Source: Paramoeba atlantica
Lineage: Eukaryota > Protista > Discosea
Length of the DNA: 64,000 bases
Assembly (NCBI GenBank): GCA_977017575.1
Contig: CDRNVI010000193.1
Coordinates: forward strand, 1-64,000
Reading direction: 5' to 3'
The translations under genes and the position numbers were made by a program. The notes beneath the pieces are model-generated. The model was not told where the DNA came from and searched no databases. It was given only the letters and a program-made list of their open reading frames with translations. This document shows positions 1 to 57,730 of this stretch, one piece after another. Position 1 is the first letter of the stretch. Each line of letters opens with the position of its first letter.

Positions 1-1355
1 GAAGATCTCGCTTTAGGCCTCGCAGGGTGACTGTCAATAAAGATCCCCAACTGCCCTTCAATACATTCAATCTTCTTGAGCACTGCAGAAATCATTCTGG
101 GGATTATTCCTCTCCTCCACGACTTCCCTTCCTTCGGACCCTTCCAACCAAGGGAGGCTTGGTCCAACAGACCCATTTCAAGGGAAGAGTATGGCCTCTG
201 GACCGTAGATTTCCTAAGAATGCGAGAATTGTGAAGGGATCTTACAAGAGAGTAGATCTTCCACAGTTCTCTGAACAAAGCCGCCTCAGTGTTTCTTTCT
301 CTTCAGTAGGGAACTAATTCCCAAGCTGTGGTCTTAAATCTGGTCAAAAACTCGTTAAAATCATCACCCTCAGAGAAGGTACCCATCCTCTCAATAAGAG
401 TGTTGATGAACCCATGGTCATTAATCAGATACTCAGGGATGGATTTCTTATTCGCCCGAATCTCCCATTCCTTAAACGAGGATCCTCCAATCAGCAGTGC
501 ATGATCTTTAAAGCCGGACGGGATGGCATTGATAAACAAACATTTTAATAGAGCCTTGGACAAGAAGAAGATATGGTCGATACACCTCCCTTTATAATGG
601 GTGGGTTCATCCCATTTCAAGCATGACATACAAAGAGTAGCACAACACTTTTCAATTTCCCCCATCTGTTTTTCCTTCACATCCCAATTGAAATCACCCC
701 CAAAGATATTTATGCTCCTGGGGTTCTGACCGAAGAAACAAGCGGCTTCCTGCGAGATGGTGGCTACTTTGAGGTCAGGGTGACAGTATATATTCAGGAC
801 GGAATAGTTCGTCAATCCAATAGTCACATGGACACCAAATAATCCACTCATGGTCTGGTCAAAGAAACAGGGAGAGATCTCTTTCACCTCCTCCATCTGC
901 CTAACACCAATGAGCAGACCCCTCCTCTTCCCAAAGGAGTTGTCTCTCAACCAGATATACTTCCTCAATTGGTTCCTGATAAGATCAAGGTCACTTTCAA
1001 AATCAGAGTGAGATTCTTGAATCAAAATGAAAAGAGGCCGACAACTCCTAGCCATCTTCTGAAGGGTTCTCAATTTTTCGAAATTTTGAATCCCATTCAT
1101 GTTCCAGGAAATAACACGTGCATCAGGAAACCTACATTCATCACTCTCACTTAAATTAGCTGAGGACCTATCACGGGGGTCAACTCCTGGCTCACTCGGA
1201 GGACCTGATGGGAGGCACTCTGACTGGGATACATTAGGCAAGTTTGTTGTTGGGGGAGGAGCTACCTGGGGGTCCACACCAAAACTACTTCTAATATCCA
1301 CCAATCCCTTTTCCTTTCTCTTCTTATTCTTCTTCTTCTTGAGTTTAGTCATCAT
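1..1355 (-). pseudogene. LINE-A ORF2 N-terminus (basic leader plus APE endonuclease), TGG>TGA stop at 303-305
   Basis: ORF 303..1355 has AP-endonuclease motifs and matches 48522 onward. Confidence 0.92.
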
Positions 1356-1360
1356 TTGTT

Positions 1361-1459
1361 TGTTTTTTTTTTTTTTTTGTTTTTGTTTTTGTGTTTTTGT
1401 GTTTTTGTGTTTTTGTGTTTTTGTGTTTTTGTGTTTTTGTGTTTTTTTTTTTTTTTTTT
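1361..1459 (-). repeat. Inter-ORF spacer of LINE-A copy 1: about 7 x AAAAACAC flanked by A-runs
   Basis: (GTGTTTTT)n read directly on the + strand. Confidence 0.9.
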
Positions 1460-3731
1460 AAATGACTGACTTCCCTCCCTCACTCTCTCTCCTTGCTTGG
1501 GTTGTTCTGGCAAACTCCTCGTTTGTTTCGATCTCCATAGCATCCCCCTCTTCCTCCTCTTTTCCTTCCACTCTCATATCTGACCCTTCAACCAAAAAGG
1601 AAAAGGGGACACCGTCTTGGACACCACCGCCTCTTTCCTCGGGTTTTTCCATAAGTGGATGAACAAAACCCACCCCTTCCTCATTTGGAAATTTCACCAA
1701 CTTTCTTTCCCTGCTCTCCTTTTCTTGTGCGATTTTTCTTTTCTTTTGTGATATTTTTTCCTTTTCCTCTTCACTCTCATTCTTTCCTTTTTCCCACCCT
1801 ACTCTAACATTAATCACCTCTTCTGATCCGCCCTTCTTCCTCTTAGTGCATCCTGTCTTCACAAGGTACTCAACCAAATAGAAAGCTTGACGCCTTAATC
1901 TCCTATCCTCTGGGAAAATTGAGCCATTCTCCAACCCCTCATAAACTCTTCCAAAATCCTCGGTTGCGCTTGCCCATTCGATGTTCAGGTTCAATTTCTT
2001 TAACATTGATTTCGCCTCCCTTCTATTGTCAGGTTCCTCCACCAATCCATTTTCGACCAGTAAATCTTCTTCGTTGATAAAGATGGGAGCAGGGCCAGAA
2101 ACAGGTTGGCTTCTTCTGTTCTCCTTCTTTTGGATCACAGAATTAGCGCAATTTCTTGACTTGCCCACAGTCTCTTTTGATAAAGAAGCAGACTTAAAGG
2201 AAGAGACTACTGGGTTGGAACATGTGTTCACCGATGTCCAGGTACCCTTCTTTTTTGGTTGAGCTTGCGGTCACTGGGCTGGCAATATGGGGGGCACTGA
2301 GAATCCACTAACTTGTTTGCTGCTCCCATTTATTGTTTTAATTTTCGAAAAGGTTTTGGTCCTGATGGGAGAAAACAAACTCATCTTACTCAGAGCTGCA
2401 GCATCACGCTTGACTGGACCCACAGAGGAACTCCTTTGGACAGCTGATCCCTTAGTTGTGGAAGAAGGTACTTTGAAGTTATTGGGTACAACTTCATGGC
2501 TCTTCTTCACAGGAGGGAGGCCCTTCGGAGGGGTAGGTTCAGCAGGAATAACATTAGGTGAGCGAGACACCAACCCTTGGCCACCAGCATTACACGCAGG
2601 TAAATTTGAGCCATCTTTTTTAACACCAATGGGGGAGAGACCTTCAGCAGGCTTAGAAGCTTGTGACTTGGGGGGAGTTTGATCTTTTCTCTCAGGGCCC
2701 ACCACCATAGACTCACCAGTATTACCGAGGGGGGCACAGGATGAGGGGACTCCTTCAGGTGAGACGAAGTTAAATTGCACACCATCTCTGGCAGCTTGTT
2801 TTCTTATCTTAACTCCTTTGGGGTCGCGGGTGTTGATTGAGTACATTTTCGTTCTCGCCATATTGCCAACTTCACTTGGATCCTTTTTTTGTAAAATTTC
2901 AAATAAACAATCCAAACAAGCAGGATGGTTAATTTGGCAAGTGGGGCATTTCACCACTTTATCAAAGGGCCTCGATGGGGTCCAAACAGAAACTCGAGCT
3001 TGAGTATTGCTAATCCCCAACCACCCTTTGGTGTGGGCGATGAGACGGACAAGGTTAATGGGGATTTGGGTGTAAACCAAAACAATACAATTTTGGGCTA
3101 TTTGAACTACTTCCTTCAAGTTATGTCTCGGAAGAGAATTTGGGTCAGCAAAAAGATTCTGGATCCACTCCACACCCTCGGCTTCGAAGGGAACCCTGAT
3201 TTTGAGCCCCCACAATTTTGCGTCCTTGTTGTTCCTCCAGACAAAGGATTTCTTGAGTTTTTTTGCCAATTTGTCACCTTTGTTCAAAAACTCTTTTTCT
3301 ACACTGGCAGCATCCATGTTCTCAAGCACTGAGATCACAAAATGGCCCTGCTTGACATTCACAAAAATCTTCCCTTTAAGAGAAGTCACATTTTCAATCG
3401 CTTTGATAACCTCGTTGAAGTTGGGAAGTCCCAGTCTAAAATCCAGTGATCCCACTAACTTTGTTGATCTCGACTTGGCTCCAACAACAGTTTTTGGGTT
3501 CAGGCGCATGACTAAACCTTGGTATAGTCTGACATTGTTCCGATCAATCTCGTGTAACACATCGCTGAGACCTTTGGAGGCTGGAAAGCCTTCCTTGGTT
3601 TCGAGAGGTCTTTTCTTTCTTTCACTTTTTTTAACAACTTGAGCAAATGATTCACTATCCGCTCGTCCTGACCAGGCGTTTCTGGCAGGAAAACCCTCTC
3701 CTTCCTTTACACTGGGTGAAGAGGTTTCCAT
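1458..3731 (-). pseudogene. LINE-A ORF1 (gag-like, CPTCQINHPACLDC zinc knuckle), one premature stop
   Basis: ORF track 2271..3758 and 1458..2231 are in the same frame and homologous to ORF1 at 46157-48424. Confidence 0.9.
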
Positions 3732-3813
3732 AATATTTTTTGTGGCAACCAGCCACAAGAATACACACTACAACAAAAGATAGGAAATTCAGACAAATGT
3801 ATCTTGAACCCCC

Positions 3814-3865
<52 letters not shown>

Positions 3866-5662: not shown

Positions 5663-5982
5663 AAGTATTACCAATTCTGATTATCAGATTGTGATGAGAT
5701 ATTGGGCCAAATGGCTAATGGAAAGTGTCAGAGAGGTGATTTCCCCTGAACAAAATGCTATGTTTGCTGGAAGGTCCATTGATAAAGCAGTGGAATCAAT
5801 ACATGATTGGTTTATGGAAGCAATGGCAGAGAGCAAAGACATAACCATCCTCCAAACTGATTTCTGTAAGACCTATAACTATGTTAACCATGAAGCCCTT
5901 ATAGAATTGCTGATTGAGTTGAATGCTCCCCCCCAAGCTCTTGAAGTTGTATTTAAAGTTCTGCAAGAGTCAGATACATGGC
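5660..5982 (+). mobile_element. LINE family A RT fragment
   Basis: Aligns closely with about 50290-50615 (ISITNSDY...LQTDFCK...ESDTW). Confidence 0.88.
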
Positions 5983-28500: not shown

Positions 28501-28923
28501 TTTTTTTTTTTTTGAGGCAGACTTTATTCAATTAGTAGTTCTTAATCTAAGCCATTTGAATTACATTAAATTATGTTTGTTTTTAACTTCTAACAAGAGG
28601 TGAAGTTTTTAAACTTCAGCTTAGTTCAGTCGGTCTTTATGCTGAACTTTAGAACTTCTGCAAGTTCAGGCTGGAGAATGCACATCAGAAGGGAGAATAA
28701 TCCAAAGCTCCTTCCAAGGGAATTTATCCTCAACTTTTTAGCAGACAGGGCTGAGATGTAACCTGTTCTGATTTTCACACTTCTTCAAGAGCTCCTCACT
28801 CCAATCAAATCACTCTACAGCACCAGAAAAATTTTCTATAATCTCAAAAAACTAGGATTTGAACTTGCCCCTCCAGGGTTGGACATAGTCGAATTTACAA
28901 CTAAACTATGGGCACCAACCACA
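28501..28923 (-). mobile_element. SINE family C, full length, inserted in Copia-1 RT
   Basis: Poly(T) at 28501-28513. TSD TGTGGA(A/G)ATATTGC at 28487-28500 and 28924-28937. Confidence 0.93.
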
Positions 28924-29512
28924 TGTGGAGATATTGCATCAAAACACAACATGGAAAGGTTACTTCCTTCAAGTCACAATATTGTATCAATGGCTCTTCA
29001 TTTATTCCAGACTCCATCAATGAGGTGTATTCCCCTGTTGCCCATTCCTCCACTCTGAGAACCATTCTGTGCTTGGCTGCCCTATTTGGATGTAAGCTCT
29101 ATGGTGGTGATGTACCCTCAGCATATGTTTGTGCTGATGTTGATCCTGACATGAAACCTGTTTATATAAGTTAACCCCCTGGTTTTGTTGAGAAAGGAAA
29201 TGATTTTGTGTGGCTGATGTTGAAAGGAATTTATGGATACCCCCCTGCTGGTCAAAACTGGTACAATCATTTGGTTGAGTCCCTATTGGCTTTTGGCTTC
29301 ATTCGGAACAATGTTGATCCTTGTCTGTTCATGATTGCTGAATCAAATGGAATTATGTTTTTGGTTGCTATTGTGGATGACTTGACCTGGTTTTCCACCT
29401 GCACAAAATTGCACAAGCACTTTGTGGAATACATGTGTGGAAAATATGATCTAAAATACTTTGACACAGTTGATTGGTTGATTGGAATGCAGATCAAGCA
29501 AGATGAGCTCTT

Positions 29513-30254
29513 CAAAAACTATGCCTTGAATGAACTACTTTGTGAAATCTGTAAGTTAGCAATGTGCTTTGACAAGATAGAATTAATCCATGTACCCTGA
29601 GAACTTAACAAGCGAGCTGATGCAATTGCAACTGCTGCAAGTTGGTCTAAAGAGGATGGAACATGTGCTGTGAATGATCATCATTGGGATCCAAGATCAC
29701 AACATGTTGCAGAAACCAGTGAAGAGTGGATTATTTTGAATTCAACCCTGTGGAACTGGATCAATTCCCCTCTCACCCATGACTGGACTTTCCCCATCCC
29801 CCCAGGGAATTTTGTAAGGAAATTCCAAGGAAACACAGTGACAACCCTCCATGTTTTGTTTCCAGCCCAAACTGCTCTTGAGAATGCTCTAATCCTCCCT
29901 GTAATAATTACTAAAGATATCCAAGGATGGTTCCATCAGTTCCAAGAAAGCAATCTGGTGAGGAGCTTTATCAAAGAAGATTTTTGAAGGAATGTAATTA
30001 ACTTCATAGAAACCTCCAAACCAAATTCACTCCCTGGTTTTAGAAGACAGACAATCAAACGCAGACCCTTTAGTGAGAACTAAAGTTGGTAAAGAAACTC
30101 CAATGCATCCTATGCTGAAGAGATCCTTGAATCTAACTCTTAACTTATCTCCCCTCCCCCCCCTCTTTTTTCCCCTCTCTTTTCCATCCTAGAGATGGTT
30201 TTTAACTCTAATAAATGGCACCTGGTGTCTGAACCTTTAAAAAAAAAAAAAAAA
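29513..30254 (+). mobile_element. LINE-B 5'-truncated 3' fragment with poly(A), inserted in Copia-1 RT
   Basis: Matches 32095-32582. TSD ATGAGCTCTT at 29503-29512 and 30255-30264. Confidence 0.92.
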
Positions 30255-32582
30255 ATGAGCTCTTTCAAGTTTCTTTGGACCAATCTGATTATGTGAAGTC
30301 AATCTGTCAAGAATACAATCACCTGGTTCGAATCCACTACAAGACCCCTGCTTCTCCAAAAATAAGATTGTGCCCTGATAGCTATCCCACCAACATCTCC
30401 ATCCCCATGATCAATGGGAAGTTCTTGTATGTCTCCAACACCCAACCAGATATCTCATATGCTGTTGGCCAGATCTGCAAGTTCCAAACCTGTCCCTCCA
30501 AAGAACTTGAGAATGCTATTTGTCACCTTATTTCTTATCTGAATGGATGCCCTAATGAGGAAATCAAATTTGTCCACCCTGCTAGTTTTGACCCCAAATT
30601 GATGACTGTTGATTTGAGTGTGTTTTGTGATGCTGCCTTTGCTGATCAATATGACCATCGCTCCACCTACAGCTATTTGGTTTTCTTATGCTCCAATCTG
30701 ATTTCCTGGTGTTCCAAGACAACCCCTTCTGTGAAACTCTCATCAACTGATGCTGAATATTATGTATTAGCTGAGGTCACAAAAGAGATTATGTATCTGA
30801 AACAATTGTTGGAGACTCTGGGTTTGACAGTTAAAACCCCTATTTTAATTTATGAGGACAATCAACAAGCTATTGACATTGCAAACAACCTGATGATCAA
30901 GTTGAGAACCAAGCACATTGATATTAAACTGCATTTTATTTGAGAGTTGATTGAAAATAAGACCATTTCTCTTGTTTATCACTATTCCTCTGTACAACAT
31001 GCAGACATGATGACCAAGCCTCTTGAGAGAATCCTGCATGAGAGACATACGAATGTTTGTTTTTCCAGATTGCATTGAAGTATTCATTGGATGGAGGGGA
31101 GTGTTGGATGCAACTTCTAACCTTATTAAGATAAATCTGGTTTTATTGAAGTTGTCTGAACATTATTGCATCCTCCTGAAACATTGCAATGCAACCACCT
31201 ATTCCATTGTCGCTTGTTCGCACAACCTTGTTTGTCACAAATAAAGTTTATTCTCATTTTCCTCTCTAAACCCTTGTGCCTTACATCGGTTTTATCATTT
31301 TCCCTGTTTCACCTCCAACACTATCTAACTCCATGCATGGGATATTTAGTGAGATTCAAACTGATTCCAAAATCTGTTGCCTCCTTGATGTGGAAATCCA
31401 TCCACTCAGCTCTGGGTGCCTATGCCAACACAAAAAGAGGGCTGCCTACAAGAGATAAGTTGGCTTACTTCACAAACCAAAACTCAAGTTGCTGACTCTG
31501 CCACTGAGAAAAGGAGTCATGAACTCATCTTCTGGAGGAATGTTCTGTGGCTGAGGGCCTCCTCCAAGCAATGGGAAGGAAATGTATTTTGTTGAATATA
31601 CCCAGCTGGCAAGAAACTAAGAATGTGTGTGGCCTTGTCTCAAATTTTCTCACCAGACAAGAAACCTCTGTGGTGAGTGTTGCTCTGTTGAGTTTGTGGC
31701 TCACAGTGTGTGCAGAAGGATTGAAATCACCCCAGTATGCTACTGAAATTTTCGAAAAAATCCTGAGAAAGAACAAAATCCTCCCTTGGCCCCCAAGAAC
31801 TCAAACAAAGAAAGGAATCAAAGAGAAGGAAAGTTTTAAATTTAAAGGTTTTCAAGTGTTTTATGATGGTTCAGGCTGTACAGACCCTCATCTGGGGGGT
31901 GTGGGCTTTGCAGTTTTCAGGGAAGGGAAAGAGATATGTGGTGGGTTTGAAACCATCCCTCTTGGGTCCAACAATATTGGTGAATTTACAGACTGTCTGA
32001 AAGGAATGTAATGTGCCAGATCAATGATGAATGAGATTGAAGTTGTTGGGGATTGTATGATTCTCACCAAGGCTGCACCCAAAACCCATGCCATCAAAAA
32101 CTATGCCTTGAATGAACTACTGTGTGAAATCCATAAGTTAGCAATGTGCTTTGATGAGATAGAATTCATCCATATACCCTGAGAACTTAACAAGTGAGCT
32201 GATGCAATTGCAACTGCTGCAAGTTGGTCTAAAGAGGATGGAACATGTGCTGTGAATGACCATCATTGGGATCCAAGATCACAACATGTTGCAGAAACCA
32301 GTGAAGAGTGGATTATTTTGAATTCAACCCTGTGGAACTGGATCAATTCCCCTCTCACCCATGACTAGACTTTCCCCATCCCCCCAGGGAATTTTGTAAA
32401 GAAATTCCAAGGAAACATGGTGACAACCCCCCATGTTTTGTTTCCAGCCCAAACTGCTCTTGAGAATGCTCTAATCCTCCCTGTAATAATTACTAAAGAT
32501 ATCCAAGGATGGTTCCATCAGTCCCAAGAGAGCAATCTGGTGAGGAGCTTTATCGAGGAAGATTTTTGAAGGAATGTAATTA

Positions 32583-35500
32583 AGGGAAGAGTATAGCCTC
32601 TGGACAGTAGATTTCCTAAGAATGTGAGAATTGTGAAGGGATCTTACAAGAGAGTGGATCTTCCACAGTTCTCTGAACAATGCCACCTCAGTGTTTCTTT
32701 CTCTCCAGTAGGGAACTAATTCCCAAGCTGTGGTTTTAAATCTGGTCAAAAACTCGTTGAGATCATCACCCTCAGAGAAGGTACCCATCCTCTCAATAAG
32801 AGTGTTGATGAACCCATGGTCATTAATCAGATACTCAGGGATGGATTTCTTATTCATCTGAATCTCCCATTTCTTAAACAAGGATCCTCCAATTAGCAGT
32901 GCATGATCTTTAAAGCTGGATGGGATGGCATTGATAAACAAACATTTTAATGGAACCTTGGACGAGAAGAAGATATGGTCAATACACCTCCCTTTATAAT
33001 GGGTGGGTTCATCCCATTTCAAGCATGACATACAGAGAGAAGCACAACACTTTTCAATTTCTCCCATCTGTTTTTCCTTCACATCCCAATTGAAATCACT
33101 CCCAAAGATACTTATGCTCCTGGGGTTCTGGCCAAAGAATCAAGTGGCCTCCTGCGAGATGGTGGCTACTTTGAGGTCAGGGTGATGGTATATATTCAGG
33201 ACAGAATAGTTTGTTGATCCAATAGTCACATGAACACCAAATAATCCACTTATGGTTTCTTGAATTAAAATGAAAAGAGGCTAACAACTCCCAGCCATCT
33301 TCCAAAGGGTTCTCAATTTTTCGAAATTTTGAATCCCATTCATGTTCCAGGAAATAACATGTGCATCAGGAAACCTACATTCATCACTCTCACTTAAATT
33401 AGCTGAGAACCTATCATGGGGGTCAACTCCAGGCTCACTCGAAGGACCTGGGGGGAGGCACTCTGACTGGGATACATTAGGCAAGTTTGTTGCTGGGGAA
33501 GAAGCTACCTGGGGGCCCACACCAAAGCTACTTCTAATATCCACCAATCCCTTTTCCTTTCTCTTCTTATTCTTCTTCTTTTTGAGTTTAGTCATTGTTT
33601 GTTTGTTTTTTTTTGTTTTTTGTGTTTTTGTATTTTTGTGTTTTTGTGTTTTTGTGTTTTTGTGTTTTTTTTTGTTTTTTAAATGACTGACTTTCCTCCC
33701 TCACTCTCTTTCCTTGCTTGGGTTGTTTTGGCAAACTTTTTGTTCATTTTGATCTCCATAGCATCCCCCTCTTCTTCCTCTTCTCCTTCCACTCTCATAT
33801 CTGACCCTTCAAATGAAAAGGAAAAGGGAACACCATCTTAGACACCACCACTTCTTTCCTCAGGTTTTTTCATAAGTGGATGAACAACATCCACTCCTTC
33901 CTCTTTTGGAAAATTCACTGACTTTCTTTCCCCACTCTCCTTTTCTTGTGTGATTCTTCTTTTCTTTTGCAATATTTTTCCTTTTTCCTCTTCACTCTCA
34001 TTCTTTCCTTTCTCCCACCCTACTCTAACATTAATCACCTCTTCTGATCTGCCTTTCTTCCTCTTAGTGCATCTTGTCTTCACAAGGTACTCAACCAAAT
34101 AGAAAGCTTGATGCTTTAATCTTCTATTTTCTGGGAAAATTGAGCCATTCTCCAACCCCTCATAAACTCTTCCGAAATCCTCAGTTGCACTTGCCCATTC
34201 AATGTTCAGGTTCAATTTCTTTAACATTGCTTTCACCTCCCTTCTATTGTTGGGTTCCTCCACCAATCCATTTTCAACTGGTAAATCTTCTTTGTTGATG
34301 AAGATAGGAGCAGGGCCAGAAACAGGTTGGCTTCTTCTGTTCTCCTTCTTCTAGATCACAGAATCAGTACAATTTCTTGACTTGCCCACAGTCTCTTTTG
34401 GTTGTGAAGAAGCAGACTTAAAGAAAGAGATTACTGGGTTGGAACATGTGTTCACTGATGTCCAGGTACCCTTCTTTTTTGGTTGAGCTTGTGATTGCTG
34501 GGCTGGCAATATGGGGGGCACTGAGAATCCACTAACTTGTTTGCTGCTCTCATTTATTGTTTTAATTTTAGAAAAGGTTTTGGTTCCAATGGGAGAAAAC
34601 GAACTCATCTTAATCAGAGCTGCAGCATCATGCTTGACTGGACCCACAGAGGAACTCCTTTGGACAGCTGATCCCTTAGTTGTGGAAGAAGGTACTTTGA
34701 AGTTATTGGGTACAACTTCATAGCTCTTCTTCACAGGAGGGGGGCCCTTCGGAGGGGTAGGTTCAACAGGAATAACATTAGGTGAACGAGACACCAACCC
34801 TTGGCCACCAAAATTATGCACAGGTAAATTTGAGCCATCTTTTTTAACACCAATGGGGGAGAGACCTTTAGAAGGCTTAAAAGCTTGTGACTTGGGGGAA
34901 GTTTGATCTATTCTCTCAGGGCCCACCACCATAGGCTCACCAGTATTACTGAAGGGGGTACAAGATGAGGGGACTCCTTCAGGCAAGATGAAATTAAATT
35001 GCACACCATCTTTGGCAGCTTGTTTTCTTATCTTAACTCCTTTGGGGTTGTGGGTGTTGATCAAGTATATTTCCATTCTCACCATATTACCAACTTCACT
35101 TGGATCCTTTTTTTGTAAAATTTCAAATAAACAATCCAAACAAGCAAGATGGTTAATTTGGCAAGTGGGGCATTTCACCACTTTATCAAAGGGCCTTGCT
35201 GGGGTCCAAACAGAAACTCGAGCTTGAGTATTGCTAATCCCCAACCACCCCTTGATGTGAGCAATGAGACAGACAAGGTTAATGGAAATTTGGGTGTAAA
35301 CCAAAACAATACAATTCTGGACTATTTGAACTACTTTCTTCAAGTTATGTCTTGGAAGAGAATTTGGGCCAGCAAAAAGATTCTGAATCCACTCCATGCC
35401 CTTGGCTTTAAAGGGAACCCTGATTTTGAGCCCCCACAATTTTGTGTCCTTGTTGTTTCTCCAAACAAAGGATTTCTTGAGTTTTTTTGCCAATTCATCA

Positions 35501-36057
35501 CCTTTGTTCAAAAACTCTTTTTCTACACTGGCAGCATCCATGTTCTTGAGCACTGAGATCACAAAATGGCCCTACTTGACGTTTACAAAAATCTTCCCTT
35601 TAAGAGAAGTCACATTTTCAATCACTTTGATAACCTCATTGAAGTTGGGAAGTCCCAGTCTAAAATCCAGTGATTTCACTAACTTTGTTGGTCTCAACTT
35701 GGCTCCAACAACAGTTTTTGGGTTCAGGTGCATGACTAAACCTTGGTATAGTCTGACATTGTTCTGATCAATCTCATGTAACACATTGCTGAGACCTTTG
35801 GAGGCTGGAAAGCCTTCCTTGGTTTCAAGAGGTCTTTTCTTTTTTTCACTTTTTTTTACAATTTGAGCAAATGATTCACTATCTGCTTGTCCTGACCAGG
35901 CATTTCTGGCAGGAAATCCCTCTCCTTCCTTTACACTGGGTAAAGAAGTTTCCATAATATTTTCTGTGGCAACCAGCCACAAGAATACACACTACAACAA
36001 AAGATAGGAAATTCAGACAATTGTATCTTGAACCCCCTATTTTTTTTTTTTTTTTTT
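32583..36057 (-). mobile_element. LINE family A copy 3, 5' end intact, 3' end lost, small internal deletion near 33257
   Basis: Collinear with 181-3815. T18 at 36040-36057 and an inter-ORF repeat at about 33600-33680. Confidence 0.94.
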
Positions 36058-45593: not shown

Positions 45594-46004
45594 ATTTTGT
45601 GTTGCCTGCTTCAGGTCTGGTTGTAAGCAGTTTCAGATGAGTTGCACGACTTGGAGATGATTGATTTTCTGATTCTCAACTCTTATCAATGATTTCTCAG
45701 GGACTACTCCTTCATTAGCTTGTGCAGTGGGTACTTCAGCAGCATCATCAATAGTCAAATGATGATCAAGTCTTAACGCATAAAGGTGACTGTTGAGTGA
45801 ATTGAACCAAGACTTAAAATCTGTTGCATTAAATTTCTCCTTAAATTGCCCAAACTGGATGTTCTGGGAAATGTTGGGTTTGTAATTGGGGAAGGTCTTT
45901 TGATATTGTGGATCCAGGGATACAAATAAAACAAAAACAAAAACAAAACAAGAAAGAAGTGTGATGGGAGAGTAGACCTCTTCCTCGCTAACAACTTCAC
46001 CCAG

Positions 46005-46027
46005 GGCAGAGCTCTAGACTCTTAATC
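46005..46027 (-). promoter_or_regulatory. Copia-2 primer-binding site, complementary to the D-arm and anticodon arm of a tRNA-Lys(CUU)
   Basis: The plus strand reads GGCAGAGCTCTAGACTCTTAATC(T), which parallels tRNA-Lys GGTAGAGC...AGACTCTTAATCT. Confidence 0.8.
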
Positions 46028-46030
46028 TGT

Positions 46031-46074
<44 letters not shown>

Positions 46075-46156
46075 AGGGGTTCAAGATACAATTGTCTGAA
46101 TTTCCTATCTTTTGTTGTAGTGTGTATTCTTGTGGCTGGTTGCCACAGAAAATATT

Positions 46157-48424
46157 ATGGAAACCTCTTCACCCAGTGTAAAGGAAGGAGAGGGATTTCC
46201 TGCCAGAAACGCCTGGTCAGGACAAGCAGATAGTGAATCATTTGCTCAAGTTGTTAAAAAAAGTGAAAGAAAGAAAAGACCTCTTGAAACCAAGGAAGGC
46301 TTTCCAGCCTCCAAAGGTCTCAGCAATGTGTTACACGAGATTGATCAGAACAATGTCAGACTATACCAAGGTTTAGTTATGTGCCTGAACCCAAAAACTG
46401 TTGTTGGAGCCAAGTCAAGACCAACAAAGTTAGTGGAATCACTGGATTTTAGACCAGGACTTCCCAACTTCAACAAGGTTATCAAAGCAATTGAAAATGT
46501 GACTTCTCTTAAAGGGAAGATTTTTGTGAACATCAAGCAGGGCCATTTTGTGATCTCAGTGCTTGAGAACATGGATGCTGCCAGTGTAGAAAAAGAGTTT
46601 TTGAACAAAGGCAACAAATTGGCAAAAAAACTCAAGAAATCCTTTGTCTGGAGGAACAACAAGGACACAAAATTGTGGGGGCTCAAAATCAGGGTTCCCT
46701 TTAAAGCCGAGGGCGTGGAGTGGATCCAGAATCTTTTTGCTGACCTAAATTCTCTTTTGAGACATAATTTGAAGGAAGTAGTTCAAATAGCCCAAAATTG
46801 TATTGTTTTGGTTTACAACCAAATCCCCATTAACCTTGTCTGTCTCATTGCCCACACCAAGGGGTGGTTGGGGATTAGTGATACTCAAGCTTGAGTTTCT
46901 GTTTGGACCCCAGCAAGGCCCTTTGATAAAGTGGTGAAATGCCCCACTTGCCAAATTAACCATCCTGCTTGTTTGGATTGTTTATTTGAAATTTTACAAA
47001 AAAAGGATCCAAGTGAAGTTGGCAATATGGCAAGAATGGAAATGTACTTGATCAACACCTGTGACCCCAAAGGAGTTAAGATAAGAAAACAAGCTGCCAG
47101 AGATGGTGTGCAATTTAACTTTGTCTCACCTGAAGGAGTCCCCTCATCCTGTGCCCCCCTTGGTAAAACTGGTGAGCCTATGGTGGTGGGCCCTGAGAGA
47201 ATAGATCAAACTTCTCCCAAGTCACAAGCTTCTAAGCCTGCTGAAGGTCTCTCCCCCATTGGTGTTAAAAAAGATGGCTCAAATTTACCTGTGTGTAATG
47301 CTGGTGGCCAAGGGTTGGTGTCTTGTTCACCTAATGTTATTCCTGCTGAACCTACCCCTCCAAAGGGCCCCCCTCCTGTGAAGAAGAGCCATGAAGTTGT
47401 ACCCAATAACTTCAAAGTACCTTCTTCCACAACTAAGGGATCAGCTGTCCAAAAGAGTTCCTCTGTGGGTCCAGTCAAGCATGATGCTGCAGCTCTGAGT
47501 AAGACAAGTTCATTTTCTCCCATCAAGACCAAAACCCCTTCGAAAATTAAAACAATAAATGGGAGCAGCAAACAAGGTAGTGGATTCTCAGTGCCCCCCA
47601 TATTGCCAGCCCAGCAACCACAAGCTCAACCAAAAAAGAAGAGTACCCGGACATCGGTGAACACATGTTCCAACCCAGTAGTCTCTTCCTTTAAGTCTGC
47701 TTCTTCACCAAAAGAGACTGTGGGCAAGTCAAGAAATTGTGCTGATTCTGTGATCCAGAAGAAGGAGAACAGAAGAAGCCAACCTGTTTCTGGCCCTGCT
47801 CCCATCTTCATCAACGAAGAAGATTTACCGGTCGAAAATGGATTGGTGGAGGAACCTGACAATAGAAGGGAGGCGAAATCAATGTTAAAGAAATTGAACC
47901 TGAACATCAAATGGGCAAGTGCAACTGAGGATTTCAGAAGAGTTTATGAGGGGTTGGAGAATGGCTCAATTTTCCCAGAGGATAGGAGATTAAGGTGTCA
48001 AGCTTTCTATTTGGTTGAGTACCTTATGAAGACAGGATGCACCAAGAGGAAGAAGGGCGGATCAGAAGAGGTGATTAATGTTAGAGTAGGGTGGGAGAAA
48101 GGAAAGAATGAGAGTGAAGAGGAAAAGGGAAAAATATCACAAAAGAAAAGAAAAATTGCACAAGAAAAGGGAAGCGGGGAAAGAAAGCTGGTGAATTTTC
48201 CAAATGAGGAAGGGGTTGTTCATCCACTTATGGAAAAACCTGAGGAAAGAGGTGGTGGTGTCCAAGACAGTGTCCCCTTTTCCTGTTCGTTTGAAGGGTC
48301 AGATATGAGAGTGGAAGGAGAAGAGGAGGAAGAGGGGGATGCTATGGAGATCGAAACGAACAAGGAGTTTGCCAGAACAACCCAAGCAAGGAGAGAGAGT
48401 GAGGGAGGGAAGTCAGTTGTTTAA
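46157..48424 (+). pseudogene. LINE-A ORF1, about 755 aa, single CGA>TGA stop at 46892-46894
   Basis: ORFs 46130..46894 and 46931..48424 are in frame. Copy 1 has Arg (QARVSV) at that codon. Confidence 0.92.
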
Positions 48425-48521
48425 AAAAAAAAACACAAAAACACAAAAACACAAAAACACAAAAACACAAAAACACAAAAACACAAAAACACAAAAACAA
48501 AAAAAAAAAAAAAACAAACAA
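48425..48521 (+). repeat. Inter-ORF spacer of LINE-A copy 2: about 8 x AAAAACAC between A-runs
   Basis: Read directly from the sequence. Confidence 0.92.
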
Positions 48522-51500
48522 ATGATGACTAAACTCAGGAAGAAGAAGAATAAGAAGAGAAAGGAAAAGGGATTGGTGGATATTAGAAGTAGCTTTGGTG
48601 TGGGCCCCCAGGTAGCTCCTCCCCTGACAACAAACTTGCCTAATGTATCCCAGTCAGAGTGCCTCCCATCAGGTCCTCTGAGTGAGCCAGGAGTTGACCC
48701 CTGTGATAGGTCCTCAACTAATTTAAGTGAGAGTGATGAATGTAGGTTTCCTGATGCATGTGTTATCTCCTGGAACATGAATGGGATTCAAAATTTCGAA
48801 AAATTGAGAACCCTTTGGAAGATGGCTGGGAGTTGTTGGCCTCTTTTCATTTTGATTCAAGAATCTCACTCTGATTTTGAATGCGACCTTGATCTCATTA
48901 GGAACCAATTGAGGAAGTATATCTGGTTGAGAGACAACTCCTCTGGGAAGAGGAGGGGTCTGCTCATTGGAGTTAGGCGGATGGAGGGGGTGAAAGAGAT
49001 CTCTCCCTGTTTCTTTGACCAAACCATGAGTGGATTATTTGGTGTCCATGTGACTATTGGATTGACAAACTATTCTGTCCTGAATATATACCGTCACCCT
49101 GACCTCAAAGTAGCCACCATCTCACAGGAGACCACTCGTTTTTTCGGCCAGAACCCCAGGAGCATAAATATCTTTGGGGGTGATTTCAATTGGGATGTGA
49201 AGGAAAAACAGATGGGGGAAATTGAAAAGTGTTGTGCTTCTCTCTGTATGTCATGCTTGAAATGGGATGAACCCACCCATTATAAAGGGAGGTGTATCAA
49301 CCATATCTTCTTCTTGTCCAAGGCTCCATTAAAATGTTTGTTTATCAATGCCATCCCGTCTGGCTTTAAAGATCATGCACTGCTGATTGGAGGATCCTCG
49401 TTTAAGGAATGGGAGATTCAGGCAAATAAGAAATCCATCCCTGAGTATTTGATTAATGACCATGGGTTCATCAACACTCTTATTGAGAGGATGGGTACCT
49501 TCTCCAAGGGTGATGATCCCAACGAGTTTTTGACCAGATTTAAAACCACAGCTTGGGAATTAGTTCCCTACTGGAGAGAAAGAAACACTGAGGCAGCATT
49601 GTTCAGAGAACTGTGGAAGATCCACTCTCTTGTAAGATCCCTTCACAATTCTCGCATTCTGAGGAAATCTACTGTCCAGAGGCCATACTCTTCCCTTGAA
49701 ATGGGTCTGTTGGACCAGGCCTCCCTTGGTTGGAAAGGTCCAAAGGAAGGGAAGTCATGGAGGAGAGGAATAATCCCCAGAATGATTTCTGCAGTGCTCA
49801 AGAAGATTGAATGTATTGAAGGACAGTTGGGGATCTTTATTGACAGCCACCCTGCGAGGCCTAAAGTGAGATCATCCCCAAGGGTTAAAGGAATTGTTGT
49901 GGATGGGGTCATTTCCAGAGATAATGGTGTGGTCCAGAAAGCAATTAAAGAATTTTGGGGGAATCTATTGGGCTCAGTGAGGCCATACAACAAGGACTCT
50001 CTCCAGAAGCTGATTGAGAACCATAAACCTCGGTTTCCTAAGGTTGATTACCATATTGTTGATGGGGCCAAGGTTGATAAACTGCTGCGACAGTGCAATA
50101 ATTCAAGTGCTGGCCCAGATGGTATCCCCTTTGCTCTCTACAGAGTGACAAGTGAACAGCTGTGTGATATGTGGTGTGAACTTATCCAGAGAGCTGGGGA
50201 ATCAATGGATTTCCCTGAGTCATTTGGGGAGAGTCAGCTTGTGTTACTACCTAAGATTGAGAATATTCCTCATCCTGACCAATTTCGACCAATAAGTATT
50301 ACCAATTCTGATTATTGGATTGTGATGAGATATTGGGCCAAATGGCTGATGGAGAGTGCCAGAGAGGTGATTTCCCCAGAACAAAATGCTATATTTGCTG
50401 GAAGGTCCATTGATAATGCAGTGGAATTGATACATGATGGGTTTATGGAAGTGGTAGCAGAGGGCAAAGACATGACCATCCTCCAAACTGACTTCTGTAA
50501 GGCCTATGACTATGTTAACTGTGAAGCCCTTATGGAGTTGCTGATTGGGTTGAATGCTCCACCCCAAGCCCTTGAAGTTGTATCTAAAGTTCTGTGAGAG
50601 TCAGATACATGGCTCCCAACTGTAGGATCGAATGATAAGACACAGAAGGAAGCCATCAAGAGCTGGACTGGTGTGCGACAAGGCTGCCCCATTTCACCTC
50701 TTCTGTTCATTATCCTTTTTGATGTTTTATTGGTTAGTTTGAACAATGGGGGTGACCTTGAGAAGCTTGCCGGGTTCATGGATGACTTAGCCCTTCTCCT
50801 TCACAGGGTCCAGTCCATAAATTCCTTGACCTCGACCTTCCAAGAATATGAACAAGGAACCAGAGCCAAACTCAACTACAACAAATGCTTTGTATTGTCA
50901 ACTGAAAAATTCTCTCCTGTGGGCCCTTGGGTTGAAATGCCTTCAGCTAATTATTTGGGAGAGGAGACTGTGTACTTGGGAGTTACAATTTCTCGAAGAA
51001 TGAACCCAACTAAAGACTGGGAAGGGGTGATCAAGAAAATGCAGAAGGTTGGAACAGCAATTAAGCAAAGGAAAGGCAGCTTCAAGGAGAGAGTCCAGAT
51101 GATCAATACTTACCTTATTCCTTGTATGGGTTATTTGGCAAGATTCAAGCTTATCTCAAAAGCTGTCTCCTCGAAGATGTGGAAGGCCATTCATTCAGCC
51201 TTAGGCGCATATGCAAATCTAAAGTCCTGTGTAATGACCTCTCTTTGTCCCCCCTTCTTTGAAAAACCCCAAGTTAGACACCCTATTCTGTTTAACTGGG
51301 TGCTGCTGATATTGAGGAAACCTCTCCAAGATCATTATAGGAATCCATTGTCCATTGGGGCCATGAGGATTGATGCTTTGGAAGCTAGTGGCACTATCTC
51401 AGAACAAGTGAGGATGGGCTCCAAAACCAAGAGATCCTTCTTTCTCCTCTCTCGGAACATTTCTGTGGGAGTGGAGAATTTCTATGTGGGGGATGGGTGC

Positions 51501-52877
51501 TTGAAATGTGTGATCTATAATTTGTCTCTTCCACAAAGACCCCAGATTAAGCGGAACCTTTTGAAATTTTTTTTGAGGGGTCTTCCAACTGTGGATAAGA
51601 TTGCCCATTTTATATCTGTGAGTCCACTTTGTCGGCTGTGTAGGAAAGCCAAAGAGTCAAGGGTGCACCTCCTTGAAGAATGTCTGAAAGTTAAGGCAAT
51701 TTTGAAAACTATTGGGAGGAGATGCTTTGTTTTAAAGATTCCTGGGTGGGAGAGTGCCAACTTTGTGTGTGGATTTATGAACCAGTATCTAAAGAAGGCT
51801 GAAGCATCTGCAGTGAGTGCAGCCCTATTGAGCTTGTGGATCACTGTATGTGCAGAAGGATCGAAGTTCCCAAGCTTTGCTGTTAAAATTTTTGATGAAA
51901 TTGCTAAGACAAACAAGATGATCCCCAAACAAACTATAAGAAAGGCTCCCCCCAAAGGTAAAAGAGAAGTGAAACAACCAAAGTTCAAGTACCCTGCCTT
52001 GCAAGTGTTTTATGATGGCTCTGGGCGTGTAGACCCCGACATTGGGGGAGCTGGGTATGTGATTATTAAGGAAGGTTTGAAGGTTGGAGGTGGATTTGAA
52101 ACAATCCCACTAGGCTCAAATAACTTGGGTGAGTTTTCGGGATGCTTAGCTGGTCTACAACAAGTTATTGGCTTTGGGCAACACATAGAGATGGTGGGAG
52201 ATTGTAAAATTCTGACTGAGGCAGCGCCTAAGATGAAACCAATTGATAACTTTGAGCTCAATGAGATCCTATCTGAGATCAGAAATATTGCTAAGAGTAA
52301 ATTTGCCAAAGTGGAGTACACTCATGTGTATTGTGAATTCAACAAGAGGTCAGATGTGATTGCAACAGCAGCAAGTCACTCTGAAGAGGATGGGATGGAA
52401 GCTGTGTTTGATAGGAACTGGGATCCAAGATTGAAACAACTAGCAACAACCAGTGAGGAATGGATTATTGAGAATTCCAAGCTGTGGAAGTGGGTGATTG
52501 AACTGTTGGATTTGGATTGGAGCTTCCCTGTGAAGAAAGTTCAGTTTAAGAGGAGGTTTAAGGACAAGGTGATTACAACTAATAATGTTTACTTCCCAGT
52601 ACAAGCTGCACTGGATGGGGTGATGATTTCTCCTGTGTTCATTTCAGATGATATTGTCAAGTGGTTTCCAGAAAGAGCTGCACCTGGAGAGATGTTAGAA
52701 AGTTTTGTTGAAAAAGAAAACCGAAAATGGAGAGAGGAGTATGAGCAAGCAAGGAACTGTTGGTTGAAGAGTGCAATGAGACCTTCCATTGTAAGGAAGA
52801 TTATTAGGCCTATTAAGGCTGTTGAGAAGAAAAAAATTTTGAAAGAGATTCAAATGAGAAATAGAAAGAAACATTAG
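48522..52877 (+). pseudogene. LINE-A ORF2, about 1451 aa: APE, RT, zinc finger, RNase H and C-terminal extension; single TGA at 50595-50597
   Basis: ORFs 48339..50597 and 50673..52877 are in frame. Motifs: WNMNG, GDFN, DH; AGPDG, DFCKAYD, RQGCPISP, FMDD, YLGV; CRLC...HLLEEC; FYDGS, NLGEF, GDC, RSDVIA. Confidence 0.95.
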
Positions 52878-53448
52878 AGCTTTTGGCCACTAAGTTGGCA
52901 CTGAAGTGGGTTGATCCTACTTGATTATAACAATTTAATTTAAGTGTATTCTTGGGTGTCCAGATTACACTTCATTTCAATAAATGGCATCTCTGATGTC
53001 TAAAATTAAAAAAAAAAAAAAAAAGACTCTTAATCTGTGTGGCCAAGGGGAAGAGGGAAAGGGACAAGAAAAACACAACAGAAAGGAACTGAAGAGAATG
53101 ATTTATTTGTATCAACAAACAGAAAAGGGGGAACAAATGATTTGTGACAGCAGAGAAAAAGGGGGGAAAACAACACAAAACAAAGGAGAGAAAGACAGTG
53201 AAAACAGTGTGAAAAGAGTGTTTTAGTGGCAGATAACTGCAATAGAACGCAGGTGGATCATTCATGAATCAACATCCCGAAAAGCATGGAGAAAAGGAAA
53301 AAGACAGGAGAAAAGAGAAGGGAGGAAAAGTGAGAAAAGGGGAAAAAGAAAAGGGAAAGGAAGGAAAGAGGAAAGAGAGAGAAGGAGGGAGGAAGGATGA
53401 GAGAAGAGGAAGGGAAAGAAGAGAGAGAGAGAAAAAAGAGAAGAAGGA

Positions 53449-54294
53449 TTTTTTTTTTTAAGGTTCAGACACCAGGTGCCATTTATTAGAGTTAAAAAAC
53501 CATCTCTAGGATGGAAAAGAGGGGGGAAGAAAGGGGGGGGGGAGGGAAGATAAATTAAGAGTTAGATCCAAAGATCTCTTCAGCATGGGATGCATTGGAG
53601 TTTCTTTACCAACTTTAGTTCTCACTAAGGGGTCTATGTTTGATTGTTCACCTTCTAAAACCAGGGAGTGAATTCGGTTTGGAGGTTTCTATGAAGTTAA
53701 TTACATTCCTTCGAAAATCTTCCTCAATAAAGCTCCTCACCAGATTGCTCTCTTGGGACTGATGGAACCATCCTTGGATATCTTTAGTAATTATTACAGG
53801 GAGAATTAGAGCATTCTCAAGAGCAGTTTGGGCCAGAAACAAAACATGGGGGGTTGTCACTGTGTTTCCTTGGAATTTCCTTACAAAATTCCCTGGGGGG
53901 ATGGGGAAAGTCCAGTCACAGGTGAGGGGGGAATTGATCCAGTTCCACAGGGTTGAATTCAAAATAATCCACTCTTCACTGGTTTCTGCAACATGTTGTG
54001 ATCTTGGATCCCAATGATGGTCATTCACAGCACATGTTCCATCCTCTTTAGACCAACTTGCAGCAGTTGCAATTGCATCAGCTTGCTTGTTAAGTTCTCG
54101 GGGTACATGGATGAATTCTATCTCGTCAAAGCACATTGCTAACTTACAGATTTCACAAAGTAGTTCATTCAAGGCATAGTTTTTGATGGCATGGGTTTTG
54201 GGTGCAGCCTTGGTGAGAATCATACAATCCCCGACAACTTCAATCTCATTTGTCATTGATCTGGCACATTGCATTCCTTTCAAACAGCCTGTAA
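53449..54294 (-). mobile_element. LINE-B 3' fragment inserted in the Copia-2 5' LTR
   Basis: Poly(T) at 53449-53459. TSD AAAAAAGAGAAGAAGGA at 53432-53448 and 54295-54311. Confidence 0.93.
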
Positions 54295-55327: not shown

Positions 55328-55856
55328 GAGTGGATTATTGTTAATTCAACCCTGTAAAACTGGATCAATTCCCCTCTCACCCATGACTGGACTTTCCCCA
55401 TCCCCCCAGGAAATTTTGTAAAGAAATTCCAAGGAAACACAGTGACAACCCCCCATGTCTTGTTTCCAGTCCAAACTGCTCTTGAAAATGCTCTAATCCT
55501 CCCTGTAATAATTACTAAAGATATCCAAGGATGGTTCCATCAGTCCCAAGAGAGCAATCAGATGAGGAACTTTATTGAGAAAGATTTTCAAAGAAATGTA
55601 ATTAACTTTATTGAAAACTCCAAACTGAATTCACTCCCTGCTTTTAGAAGGCAAACAATCAAATGCAGACCTCTTAGTGAGAACTAAAGTTGGTAAAGGA
55701 ACTCCAATGCATGCCATGCTGAAAAGATCATTGGATCTGACTTTTAATTTATCTCCCCTTCCCCCCCTTTTTTCTTTTCCCCCCTTTTCCATCCTAGCAA
55801 TGGTTTTTTAACTCCAATAAATGGCATCTGGTGTCTGAACTTTAAAAAAAAAAAAA
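55328..55856 (+). mobile_element. LINE-B 3' fragment with poly(A)
   Basis: Matches 29723-30254, with A-run at 55844-55856. Confidence 0.9.
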
Positions 55857-57348
55857 GAGATTGGGAATTGACTTGGAGGAGATCAAGAGTCAGATCAAAC
55901 AAATAGAGTAGAGAGCCAAGTGTCTTCAGAGTAGCACACATTGTGCAACAGAGAAATCAATGACTCCTTGATAAAGACATCTATGCCTTTTTGATTTACT
56001 AAATAAAGGAGAATGAGAGCTGATGTGGAACTGTCAAATTCTGAAATGATCCAACATTCACTTTTCAAATTCTCAAATTGCACAACAACATTTTGATTGC
56101 TTTTATTATTCACTGTAAAATCTATCATTTTACATTTGGAGGCTTCAATGGGAAGGGATAAAGATAAGAAACAAGAAGGAGGGACCCCTGGTAAGACGAA
56201 AAAGTAGCCTAAGAAACATCTTGGAATGTCTAAGCTAAGTCCTCCTTCTCTTGGTGAAACTCCTAGTGCTGAAAGTGATTCCCCTCTTGATTCTAGTACC
56301 CCCTCTTCCCTTCATTCTGATCCTTCTGGTCTTTCCAATTCCTCAGAAATGCAACTAGTAGTCATAAATGGCGCCCTCTACCAGCAAAAGGTCAATGACA
56401 AAGGCAAAATTGAATTGATTCCCCTGCCCAAAGTTGTGGTTGCTGCTTTGAATGTGGGTGTGAGATGAACTCTGAGCCAAGAACTTGATCAAAGCATCTC
56501 TTCATCTTCAACAACACAAAACCATTGTTTGGGAAAAGATGCTTTGATACTGATACCAGACGAGAAATTCTTTGTGGCTGACAAAGCTCTCCAACAATCA
56601 ATTGAAAGAGTGATCAATGGCCTCTCAAAGAATCTAACCAAAACAGAAAAGCTTGATGCTCTTTATCAAGTTTGGAAAACCAATGGATGGTCAAATAATG
56701 AACTTGCTGTAACCCTTGCATGACCCAAGTTGATAGCATTTGGACTTGATGTCATTGGTCATCCTCAAACCTTCCAGAAGTTGGTTTTTGATCTCTGTAT
56801 GGCTTCAAGTCACATTTACAAACCCCTTGATACTGATACAAGTGCTTTTTACTTGTACAAGTTTGATATCTCTGAGGATTTCATGACTCATACAATGAAG
56901 TTCTTGAACATTGCTGTCAAGGAAAAGGGGAGTGAGGACACCCAACTTGAAGAAGTTAAAGACATTTTCAAAGCCCAAGTACAAGATTCTTTGTACCATC
57001 AGGCATGGGAGGGAGCAAAAGCTACAGCTAAAGGAGGTGACATGCTTTCTATTGCTCTGACTGTCCAGTACCAAAAGGACTACCCAACAAAACAACTCAC
57101 TGATAAGACCCAAAACTCCCTTTCATTAGCCTTGAACCCTAATGGACAAGAGCTGAAAGAGGTGAGAAAGAGGGCACAGGAGTTGCAATGCTGAGCCTGT
57201 GAAGACTTTGGTCATGTACCCAAAAATTGTCCTTTGGTGAAAGAAGCAATGCAAAAAGGGTTGAAATATTGCTGCCATTGTGGTAATCAAGACACCCACA
57301 TTACACAACACTGCAAAGTAACCAGAAAAAGGAAAAGAGGGTTGAAAG

Positions 57349-57730
57349 CCCAGGGGGGTGAGTTCAAATCCCAGTTTTTTGATATTATAGAAAATTTTTC
57401 TGGTGCTGTAGAGTGATTTGATTGGAGTGAGGAGCTCTTGAAGAAGTGTGAAAATCAGAACAGGTTACATCTCAGCCCTGTCTGCTAAAAAGTTGAGGAT
57501 AAATTCCCTTGGAAGGAGCTTTGGATTATTCTCCCTTCTGATGTGCATCCTCCAGCCTGAACTTGCAGAAGTTCTAAAGTTCAGCATAAAGACTGACTGA
57601 ACTAAGCTGAAGTTTAAAACTTCACCTCTCATTAGAGGTTAAAAACAAACATAATTTAATGTAATTCAAATGGCTTAAATTAAGAACTACTAATTGAATA
57701 AAGTCTGCCTCAAAAAGAAAAAAAAAAAAA
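57349..57730 (+). mobile_element. SINE family C, 5'-truncated just upstream of the B box
   Basis: Matches 38331-38705 on the minus strand and ends AATAAAGTCTGCCTC-A(n). No TSD found. Confidence 0.9.

Follow-up and report, generated by a model that had tools for sequence, protein, structure and literature searches.

The window, which is the whole stretch of 64,000 nucleotides of Paramoeba atlantica DNA that was analysed, harbours three copies of LINE-A, an L1-like non-LTR retrotransposon with a length of about 7 kb. One of them, here named W2, can be followed on the forward strand from an A-run at its 5′ end to its 3′ tail, and both of its open reading frames carry an in-frame stop. The window also contains two copies of a tRNA-derived SINE, a family with an AATAAA-like signal and A13 tail, and three pieces of LINE-B, a sister family of LINE-A. 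The coordinates of all features are given in Table 1.

Table 1. Retrotransposon features in the window, with positions counted from its first nucleotide.
Feature	Position	Strand	Remarks
LINE-A, copy W2	46033-53024	+	From A-run to 3′ tail
5′ target-site duplication (TSD), 15 bp, GACTCTTAATCTGTG	46017-46031	+	Identical to 53025-53039
Extra C between TSD and A-run	46032	+	Missing from empty sites
5′ A40 tract	46033-46072	+	Arrived with the insertion
5′ UTR, 84 nt, starting TAAGGGGTTCAAGATAC	46073-46156	+	Pyrimidine run, then AG, at about +30 to +48
ORF1, 756 codons	46157-48424	+	In-frame stop 46892-46894 in W2; one CX2C..H..C motif
Inter-ORF A-rich spacer	48423-48514	+	A11, (CACAAAAA)n, A16; ends 7 nt before the ORF2 ATG
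ORF2, 1451 codons	48522-52877	+	In-frame stop 50595-50597 in W2; APE-like N-terminus, RT, Cys-His knuckle, RNase H, in this order
AATAAA polyadenylation signal	52979-52984	+	23 nt ahead of the tail
3′ poly(A) tail, A17	53008-53024	+	
3′ TSD	53025-53039	+	Same 15 bp as 46017-46031
LINE-A, second copy	1-3864	-	Reference positions 1-3804, off the contig start; A49 head at 3816-3864
LINE-A, third copy	32582-36057	-	Reference positions 1-3625, rearranged; A18 head at 36040-36057
tRNA-derived SINE	28501-28920	-	AATAAA-like signal, A13 tail, 13-bp TSD GCAATAT[C/T]TCCAC; without 5′ A-run
tRNA-derived SINE, second copy	57346-57730	+	
LINE-B	29512-30255		Sister family, RNase H region about 72% identical to LINE-A
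LINE-B	53449-54186	-	
LINE-B	55328-55856		

The ORF2 product of LINE-A possesses a reverse transcriptase (RT) domain matching Pfam RVT_1 (7e-11). In a phmmer search of the PDB, human L1 ORF2p ranked highest, with 2e-8 in the thumb/fingers region and 4e-5 in the palm region, and the RT of R2 matched ORF2 less well. The RNase H domain corresponds to Pfam RVT_3 (1.6e-11). For the putative Cys-His knuckle behind the RT, zf-RVT gave E=0.0015, which falls short of the Pfam cut-off; a CX2CX8HX4C motif is located at ORF2 residue 1037. For the N-terminus of ORF2, Pfam returned no match and PDB phmmer gave chance histone matches only. By eye, this region contains WNMNG, QESH, GGDFN and KDH in the order of AP-type endonucleases, and its protein-language features in the protein atlas have Exo_endo_phos as the nearest named clusters (score 0.95). 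A single-sequence AlphaFold2 model of the same region reached a pLDDT of 35, too low for use. The ORF1 product matched no Pfam family. A word search with ORF1 found six proteins, all from the ENA assembly ERZ24900291, and a metagenome scan with its N-terminus gave zero matches. Taken as a whole element, LINE-A is unrelated in sequence to human L1; it fits an L1-like LINE in its tail and TSDs, with AATAAA before the poly(A) and TSDs of 12-17 bp in 13 copies. Both ORFs are open in one copy (L002, with an ORF1 of 757 aa), and the family may therefore still be active.

Genome-wide, at least 78 first-look candidates of LINE-B were found. The AATAAA signal is also present ahead of LINE-B and SINE tails. 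The 3′ end of LINE-B, AATAAATGGCACCTGGTGTCTGAACCTT, parallels that of LINE-A, AATAAATGGCATCTCTGATGTCTAAAATT, including an apparent compensated small stem (CATC/GATG vs CAC/GTG). In 16 of 20 copies a G follows the 3′ tail of LINE-A, and (A)GA opens most of the TSDs, which indicates that the first-strand nick is placed with another preference than the TTTT/A of mammalian L1. The spacer between the two ORFs of LINE-A, also seen on the minus strand at 1363-1459, is a microsatellite composed of A11-21, (CACAAAAA)4-8 and A9-19. This spacer could be an internal translation-initiation element.

Several LINE-A loci are present together with their flanks in 2-5 copies at 0.1-4% divergence (L006/L007/L024, L027-L031, L010/L011/L018). 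These are large segmental duplications or uncollapsed haplotypes, in a part of the assembly that is rich in repeats. Mostly G-to-A and C-to-T changes, with AT enrichment, were found relative to the main family in the diverged copies L010, L011, L018 and L017 (contigs C184, C141, C144 and C199), a pattern that suggests deamination-type decay of these subfamilies, either methylation-linked or RIP-like. About 690 nt of (CCCTAAA)n were found at the start of contig C191 (L020:1-690), which places repeats of the TTTAGGG type at a contig end. In contig C226, one LINE-A (L012) has landed on the border of an interstitial (TTTAGGG)4, which lies on its upstream side.

In all three LINE-A copies of the window the A-run directly precedes TA(A/G)GGGGTTCAAGATAC, and the flanks upstream of the runs are unrelated to each other. 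The positions reported for these runs in the initial annotation were exact, and so were those of the 15-bp TSD around W2, to which the single extra C has to be added. The initial annotation had also concluded, from the TSD of W2, that the A-run was inserted with the element, and the copies elsewhere in the assembly bear this out. In all ten copies with two readable ends, the 5′ A-run as well as the 3′ tail is enclosed by TSDs of 12-17 bp that are non-A in sequence. Between the 5′ TSD and the A-run stand 0-3 extra bases, which are absent from four copies and read c, cc, t, tt or aat in the others. Three paralogs (L033-L035) with 92-93% identity were found for the 400 nt that precede W2. These represent empty sites, in which the upstream flank, a single TSD and the downstream flank follow one another without the A-run and without the extra C. 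Since the empty sites have one TSD and no A-run, the A40 tract arrived with W2. The 5′ A-run is thus brought in with LINE-A and is not target DNA. The two observations that, according to the initial annotation, would have spoken against this, namely full-length copies mostly without a tract within their TSDs and empty sites with an A-run, were both looked for and not made. Among the ten TSD-defined copies, in which the A-run is pure A, no foreign 3′ UTR was found next to it, and none of these copies had a 5′ transduction of more than 3 nt. L024 and L027-L031 are copies of duplicated blocks and carry no junction information.

The presence of the A-run was surveyed across the 45.7-Mb assembly (248 contigs) with the first 300 nt of LINE-A as query. 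Twenty-two matches were obtained, and a pure A-run opens all of the twenty-one that include the 5′ end. Two further diverged copies, reached on ENA contigs via ORF1 relatives, begin with A21 and A32. Hence, 23 of 23 readable 5′ ends start with an A-run, followed by TA(A/G)G..GGTTCAAGATAC, and among them are subfamilies that share only 80-87% identity with the reference, which makes this an old trait. The T before AGGGG is constant in every copy. As assembled, the homopolymers measure 8, 15, 15, 17, 18, 18, 19, 21, 22, 22, 22, 25, 26, 27, 32, 34, 37, 40, 43, 47, 49, 50 and 98 nt, and the variability described for the three copies of the window therefore holds for the family.

The 5′ ends of LINE-A start with A(n) and never with a leader exon, and a pyrimidine-tract/AG site is kept about 48 nt inside the element. 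In the window this site, a pyrimidine run followed by AG (CTATCTTTTGTTGTAG) at 46100-46120, resembles a splice acceptor. The 22 matches obtained with the initial 300 nt of LINE-A include none that begins at it. The 5′ ends of LINEs such as R2, L1Tc and Schistosoma elements are processed by ribozymes of the HDV-like or twister type. At the 5′ end of LINE-A, an Rfam cmscan of 45950-46450 with E<=10 found no ribozyme among the known families, and the folding of the 5′ UTR was moderately above that of shuffled sequences (z = -2.6).

Truncated copies and closely related pairs are informative on how the tract originates. Three 5′-truncated LINE-A copies with clean TSDs of 15-16 bp were available, namely L019 (from reference position 5759 onward), L022 (from 5876 onward) and L036 (only 43 nt plus tail), and all three adjoin their TSD directly, without an A-run. 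Therefore, the tract requires that the cDNA reaches the 5′ end of the RNA. The truncated LINE-B at 29512 is also devoid of a 5′ A-run. Among full-length copies, the closest independent pairs differ widely in tract length: A8 vs A98 at 1.9% divergence, A17 vs A43 at 1.3%, and A17 vs A49 at 1.6%. A Mantel test for inheritance of tract length gave rho = -0.28, and nearest relatives differ on average by 32.8 nt, vs 21.9 nt after permutation. Tract length is thus not inherited and is re-set at each event. After insertion it is stable, as seen in duplicated loci that keep their length: L010, L011 and L018 all have A22 at up to 4.3% divergence, and L006 and L007 both have A15 at 2.7%.

The other A-tracts of the element vary within narrow limits. 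The templated A-runs between the ORFs, although they pass through transcription and reverse transcription like the 5′ tract, are 9-21 nt long in 14 copies of the main family, and the diverged L010 and L011 have a single A23. The 3′ tails measure 11-20 nt (mean 14.6, sd 2.5, n=20), and they are just as uniform in the youngest copies, where the 5′ runs have lengths of 8, 17, 43, 47, 49, 50 and 98 nt. The sum of the 5′ and 3′ tracts ranges from 20 to 113 nt, with a mean of about 51. The 5′ tract needs a complete cDNA, is uninherited in length, is stable later and consists of pure A, and the templated runs and the tails are narrow in length; together this shows that the 5′ tract is made anew at each full-length retrotransposition.

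The initial annotation knew of no LINE with such a 5′ tract. However, a 5′ poly(A) head is already known from Zorro3, an L1-clade LINE of Candida albicans (Goodwin et al. 2007, PMC1965478; Han & Shao 2012, PMC3510499), although it is shown more cleanly in LINE-A. Zorro3 possesses poly-A at its start, between its non-overlapping ORF1 and ORF2, and, in a short form, at its end (PMC1965478). Among 30 de novo insertions of Zorro3, those with the native 5′ end had 5′ tracts from 19 to about 160 nt and 3′ tracts mostly of 15-25 nt, 6-87 A's headed the inserts that reached into the ACT1 promoter, and the single truncated insert had the 10 A's of its target only, with none gained (PMC1965478). Zorro3 always integrates in genomic poly-A, and the authors read its 5′ tract as an mRNA sequence that pairs with the target (PMC1965478). 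Similar to Zorro3, LINE-A has 5′ tracts (8-98 nt), inter-ORF runs (A11-21 and A9-19) and 3′ tails (11-20 nt). In Zorro3, however, target DNA and 5′ tract cannot be told apart and a non-A TSD is not seen, whereas LINE-A is bounded by non-A TSDs of 12-17 bp. The 5′ UTR has 84 nt in LINE-A compared to 5 bp in Zorro3, and LINE-A differs further in its 756-aa ORF1 and C-terminal RNase H; the two elements are compared here by layout. Our literature search for other LINEs with 5′ poly(A) yielded Zorro3 only, which is a weak negative, since phrases containing "5′" are unsearchable.

Heterogeneous 5′ A-leaders of tens of nucleotides are made by polymerase slippage in poxvirus post-replicative mRNAs and in transcripts of yeast linear plasmids, where they are reported to permit cap-independent translation. 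Those leaders are not DNA-encoded and are not known to be copied back, in contrast to the LINE-A tract, which is present in the DNA of every copy. By way of speculation, the A-runs ahead of ORF1 and ORF2 might serve LINE-A as cap-independent translation leaders too.

For the synthesis of the tract, we tentatively favour, at somewhat less than an even chance, that the RT on arrival at the 5′ end of the RNA goes on to copy the unused distal part of the element's own poly(A) tail. End-to-end template jumping is documented for LINE RTs, as in R2 from Bombyx mori (Bibillo & Eickbush 2002/2004, cited in PMC6895275); having arrived at the 5′ end of one template, the RT extends the cDNA on a second one without homology, and the activity has been invoked for the formation of LINE 5′ junctions. 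In the R2 models the acceptor is upstream target DNA or another RNA, whereas the acceptor proposed here, drawn from sequence comparison, is the distal tail of the same molecule. The integration of LINE-A follows ordinary target-primed reverse transcription; its targets are non-A and mostly start with (A)GA, and the TSDs are 12-17 bp long. In the favoured model, first-strand priming would take place at a depth of about 15 nt in the poly(A) tail of the RNA, and the distal tail would be left as an uncopied 3′ overhang; priming at this depth would account for both the uniform 3′ tract and the overhang. At the RNA 5′ end the RT would make an end-to-end jump onto this overhang, perhaps assisted by a few templated 5′ A's through the T-rich 3′ end of the cDNA, and would copy A's until it meets the primer junction. 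The cDNA would then end in T(n), and the top strand would read TSD, 0-3 extra nucleotides, A(n) and element. An own-tail overhang would provide a natural stop and a tract that is only ever composed of A's. The 5′ tract and the 3′ tract together would equal the tail length of the RNA, and the observed sums are plausible as mRNA tail lengths. No chimeric product proving a jump was found; one stacked pair (L023) was examined, and its two units are 8.3% diverged.

We know of no earlier proposal in which a LINE copies its own distal poly(A) tail. Such a closed loop, in which one tail supplies a fixed short 3′ tract and a variable 5′ tract, might give the element a self-renewing A-head, which in turn might act as a translation leader or as a portable promoter-opening element; as a whole this extension is less likely than not.

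Alternatively, the tract might be a transcribed poly(A) leader. Transcription would start in or just upstream of the genomic A-run, at scattered sites and/or with slippage of the polymerase on the T template as in poxvirus late mRNAs, and the RT would simply copy the leader. This is a serious possibility, although we would not expect it to be the true one. The constant T before AGGGG, together with the A-runs ahead of both ORFs, suggests that the tract may be at least partly transcribed. The RNA must contain the invariant T of A(n)-TAGGGG, and its transcription would more naturally begin on an A upstream of this T than on U. As in Zorro3, the A-runs ahead of both ORFs also hint at a role at the RNA level. 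The truncated copies without a tract fit trivially, and transduction of 1-2 nt from the parental flank could account for the extra c, cc, t and tt. W2 (c followed by A40) and L009 (flank ending in cc, followed by A37) have in common the rare variant TAAGGGG, tracts of 40 and 37 nt and a matching flank base C, and they look like parent and offspring that inherited the tract and one base of flank. One master copy whose tract measures at least 100 nt, if transcribed from scattered start sites, would give the spread of 8-98 nt as well. Against a transcribed leader, however, tract length has no phylogenetic signal, and the internal runs, which are templated, vary far less. Scattered starts alone would only shorten the tract over generations, so an expansion step would be needed in any case, yet the tract is kept through 15-20% divergence and one of the youngest copies has A98. 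A leader is also at odds with the lack of 5′ transductions longer than 3 nt in ten copies. A hybrid of both readings is quite possible, in which the cDNA, ending in T owing to a few templated 5′ A's, would pair with the tail.

It is unlikely that the RT generates the tract without a second template, either by slippage on terminal A's of the RNA or by adding untemplated T's to the cDNA as a terminal transferase. Stuttering of this kind would agree with a tract that is pure, re-set at each event and dependent on reaching the RNA end, and the outer 1-3 extra nucleotides resemble untemplated additions. Nonetheless, the internal A-runs are not expanded by the same RT, although these are not located at a template end. 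To our knowledge, moreover, untemplated additions by LINE RTs amount to a few nucleotides, and the tracts of 40-98 nt are far above that.

A jump in trans onto the poly(A) tail of another mRNA, or an insertion beside the tail of an older element, appears highly improbable. Two truncated copies, L020 and L023, do lie directly behind the 3′ end and poly(A) of another LINE; the two units of L023, however, are separate events given their divergence, and L023 was ruled out as a single-event template-switch chimera. None of the ten TSD-defined full-length copies carries a foreign 3′ UTR between TSD and A-run, and the fact that the A-run never continues into a 3′ UTR argues against the tails of other RNAs and for an own-tail overhang or a leader. 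The two explanations given in the initial annotation, a slippage-made leader and an RT that finishes on a poly(A) tail, continue to be the foremost ones, except that the tail of another RNA is now disfavoured. Finally, landing in genomic poly(A), as in Zorro3, with the A-run being target DNA in original or expanded form, would suit the three-tract architecture common to both elements but has virtually no probability left, as it is refuted for the copies examined by the non-A TSDs that enclose the two tracts in 10 of 10 copies and by the three empty-site paralogs without an A-run, and the truncated copies adjoin their TSDs directly.

Of all steps in the target-primed reverse transcription of LINEs, the completion of the 5′ junction is understood least. 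LINE-A acquires its tract without a poly-A target, and thus separates the synthesis of the tract from the choice of the target. The family represents a natural system in which an RT copying its own tail, a stuttering RT and a slippage-made leader can be told apart. The A-runs ahead of both ORFs raise, as a speculation, the idea of translation leaders in the host organism. If the jump onto the own tail is true, one poly(A) tail would be split in two at each retrotransposition, and the A-run at the head of LINE-A would renew itself with every jump.
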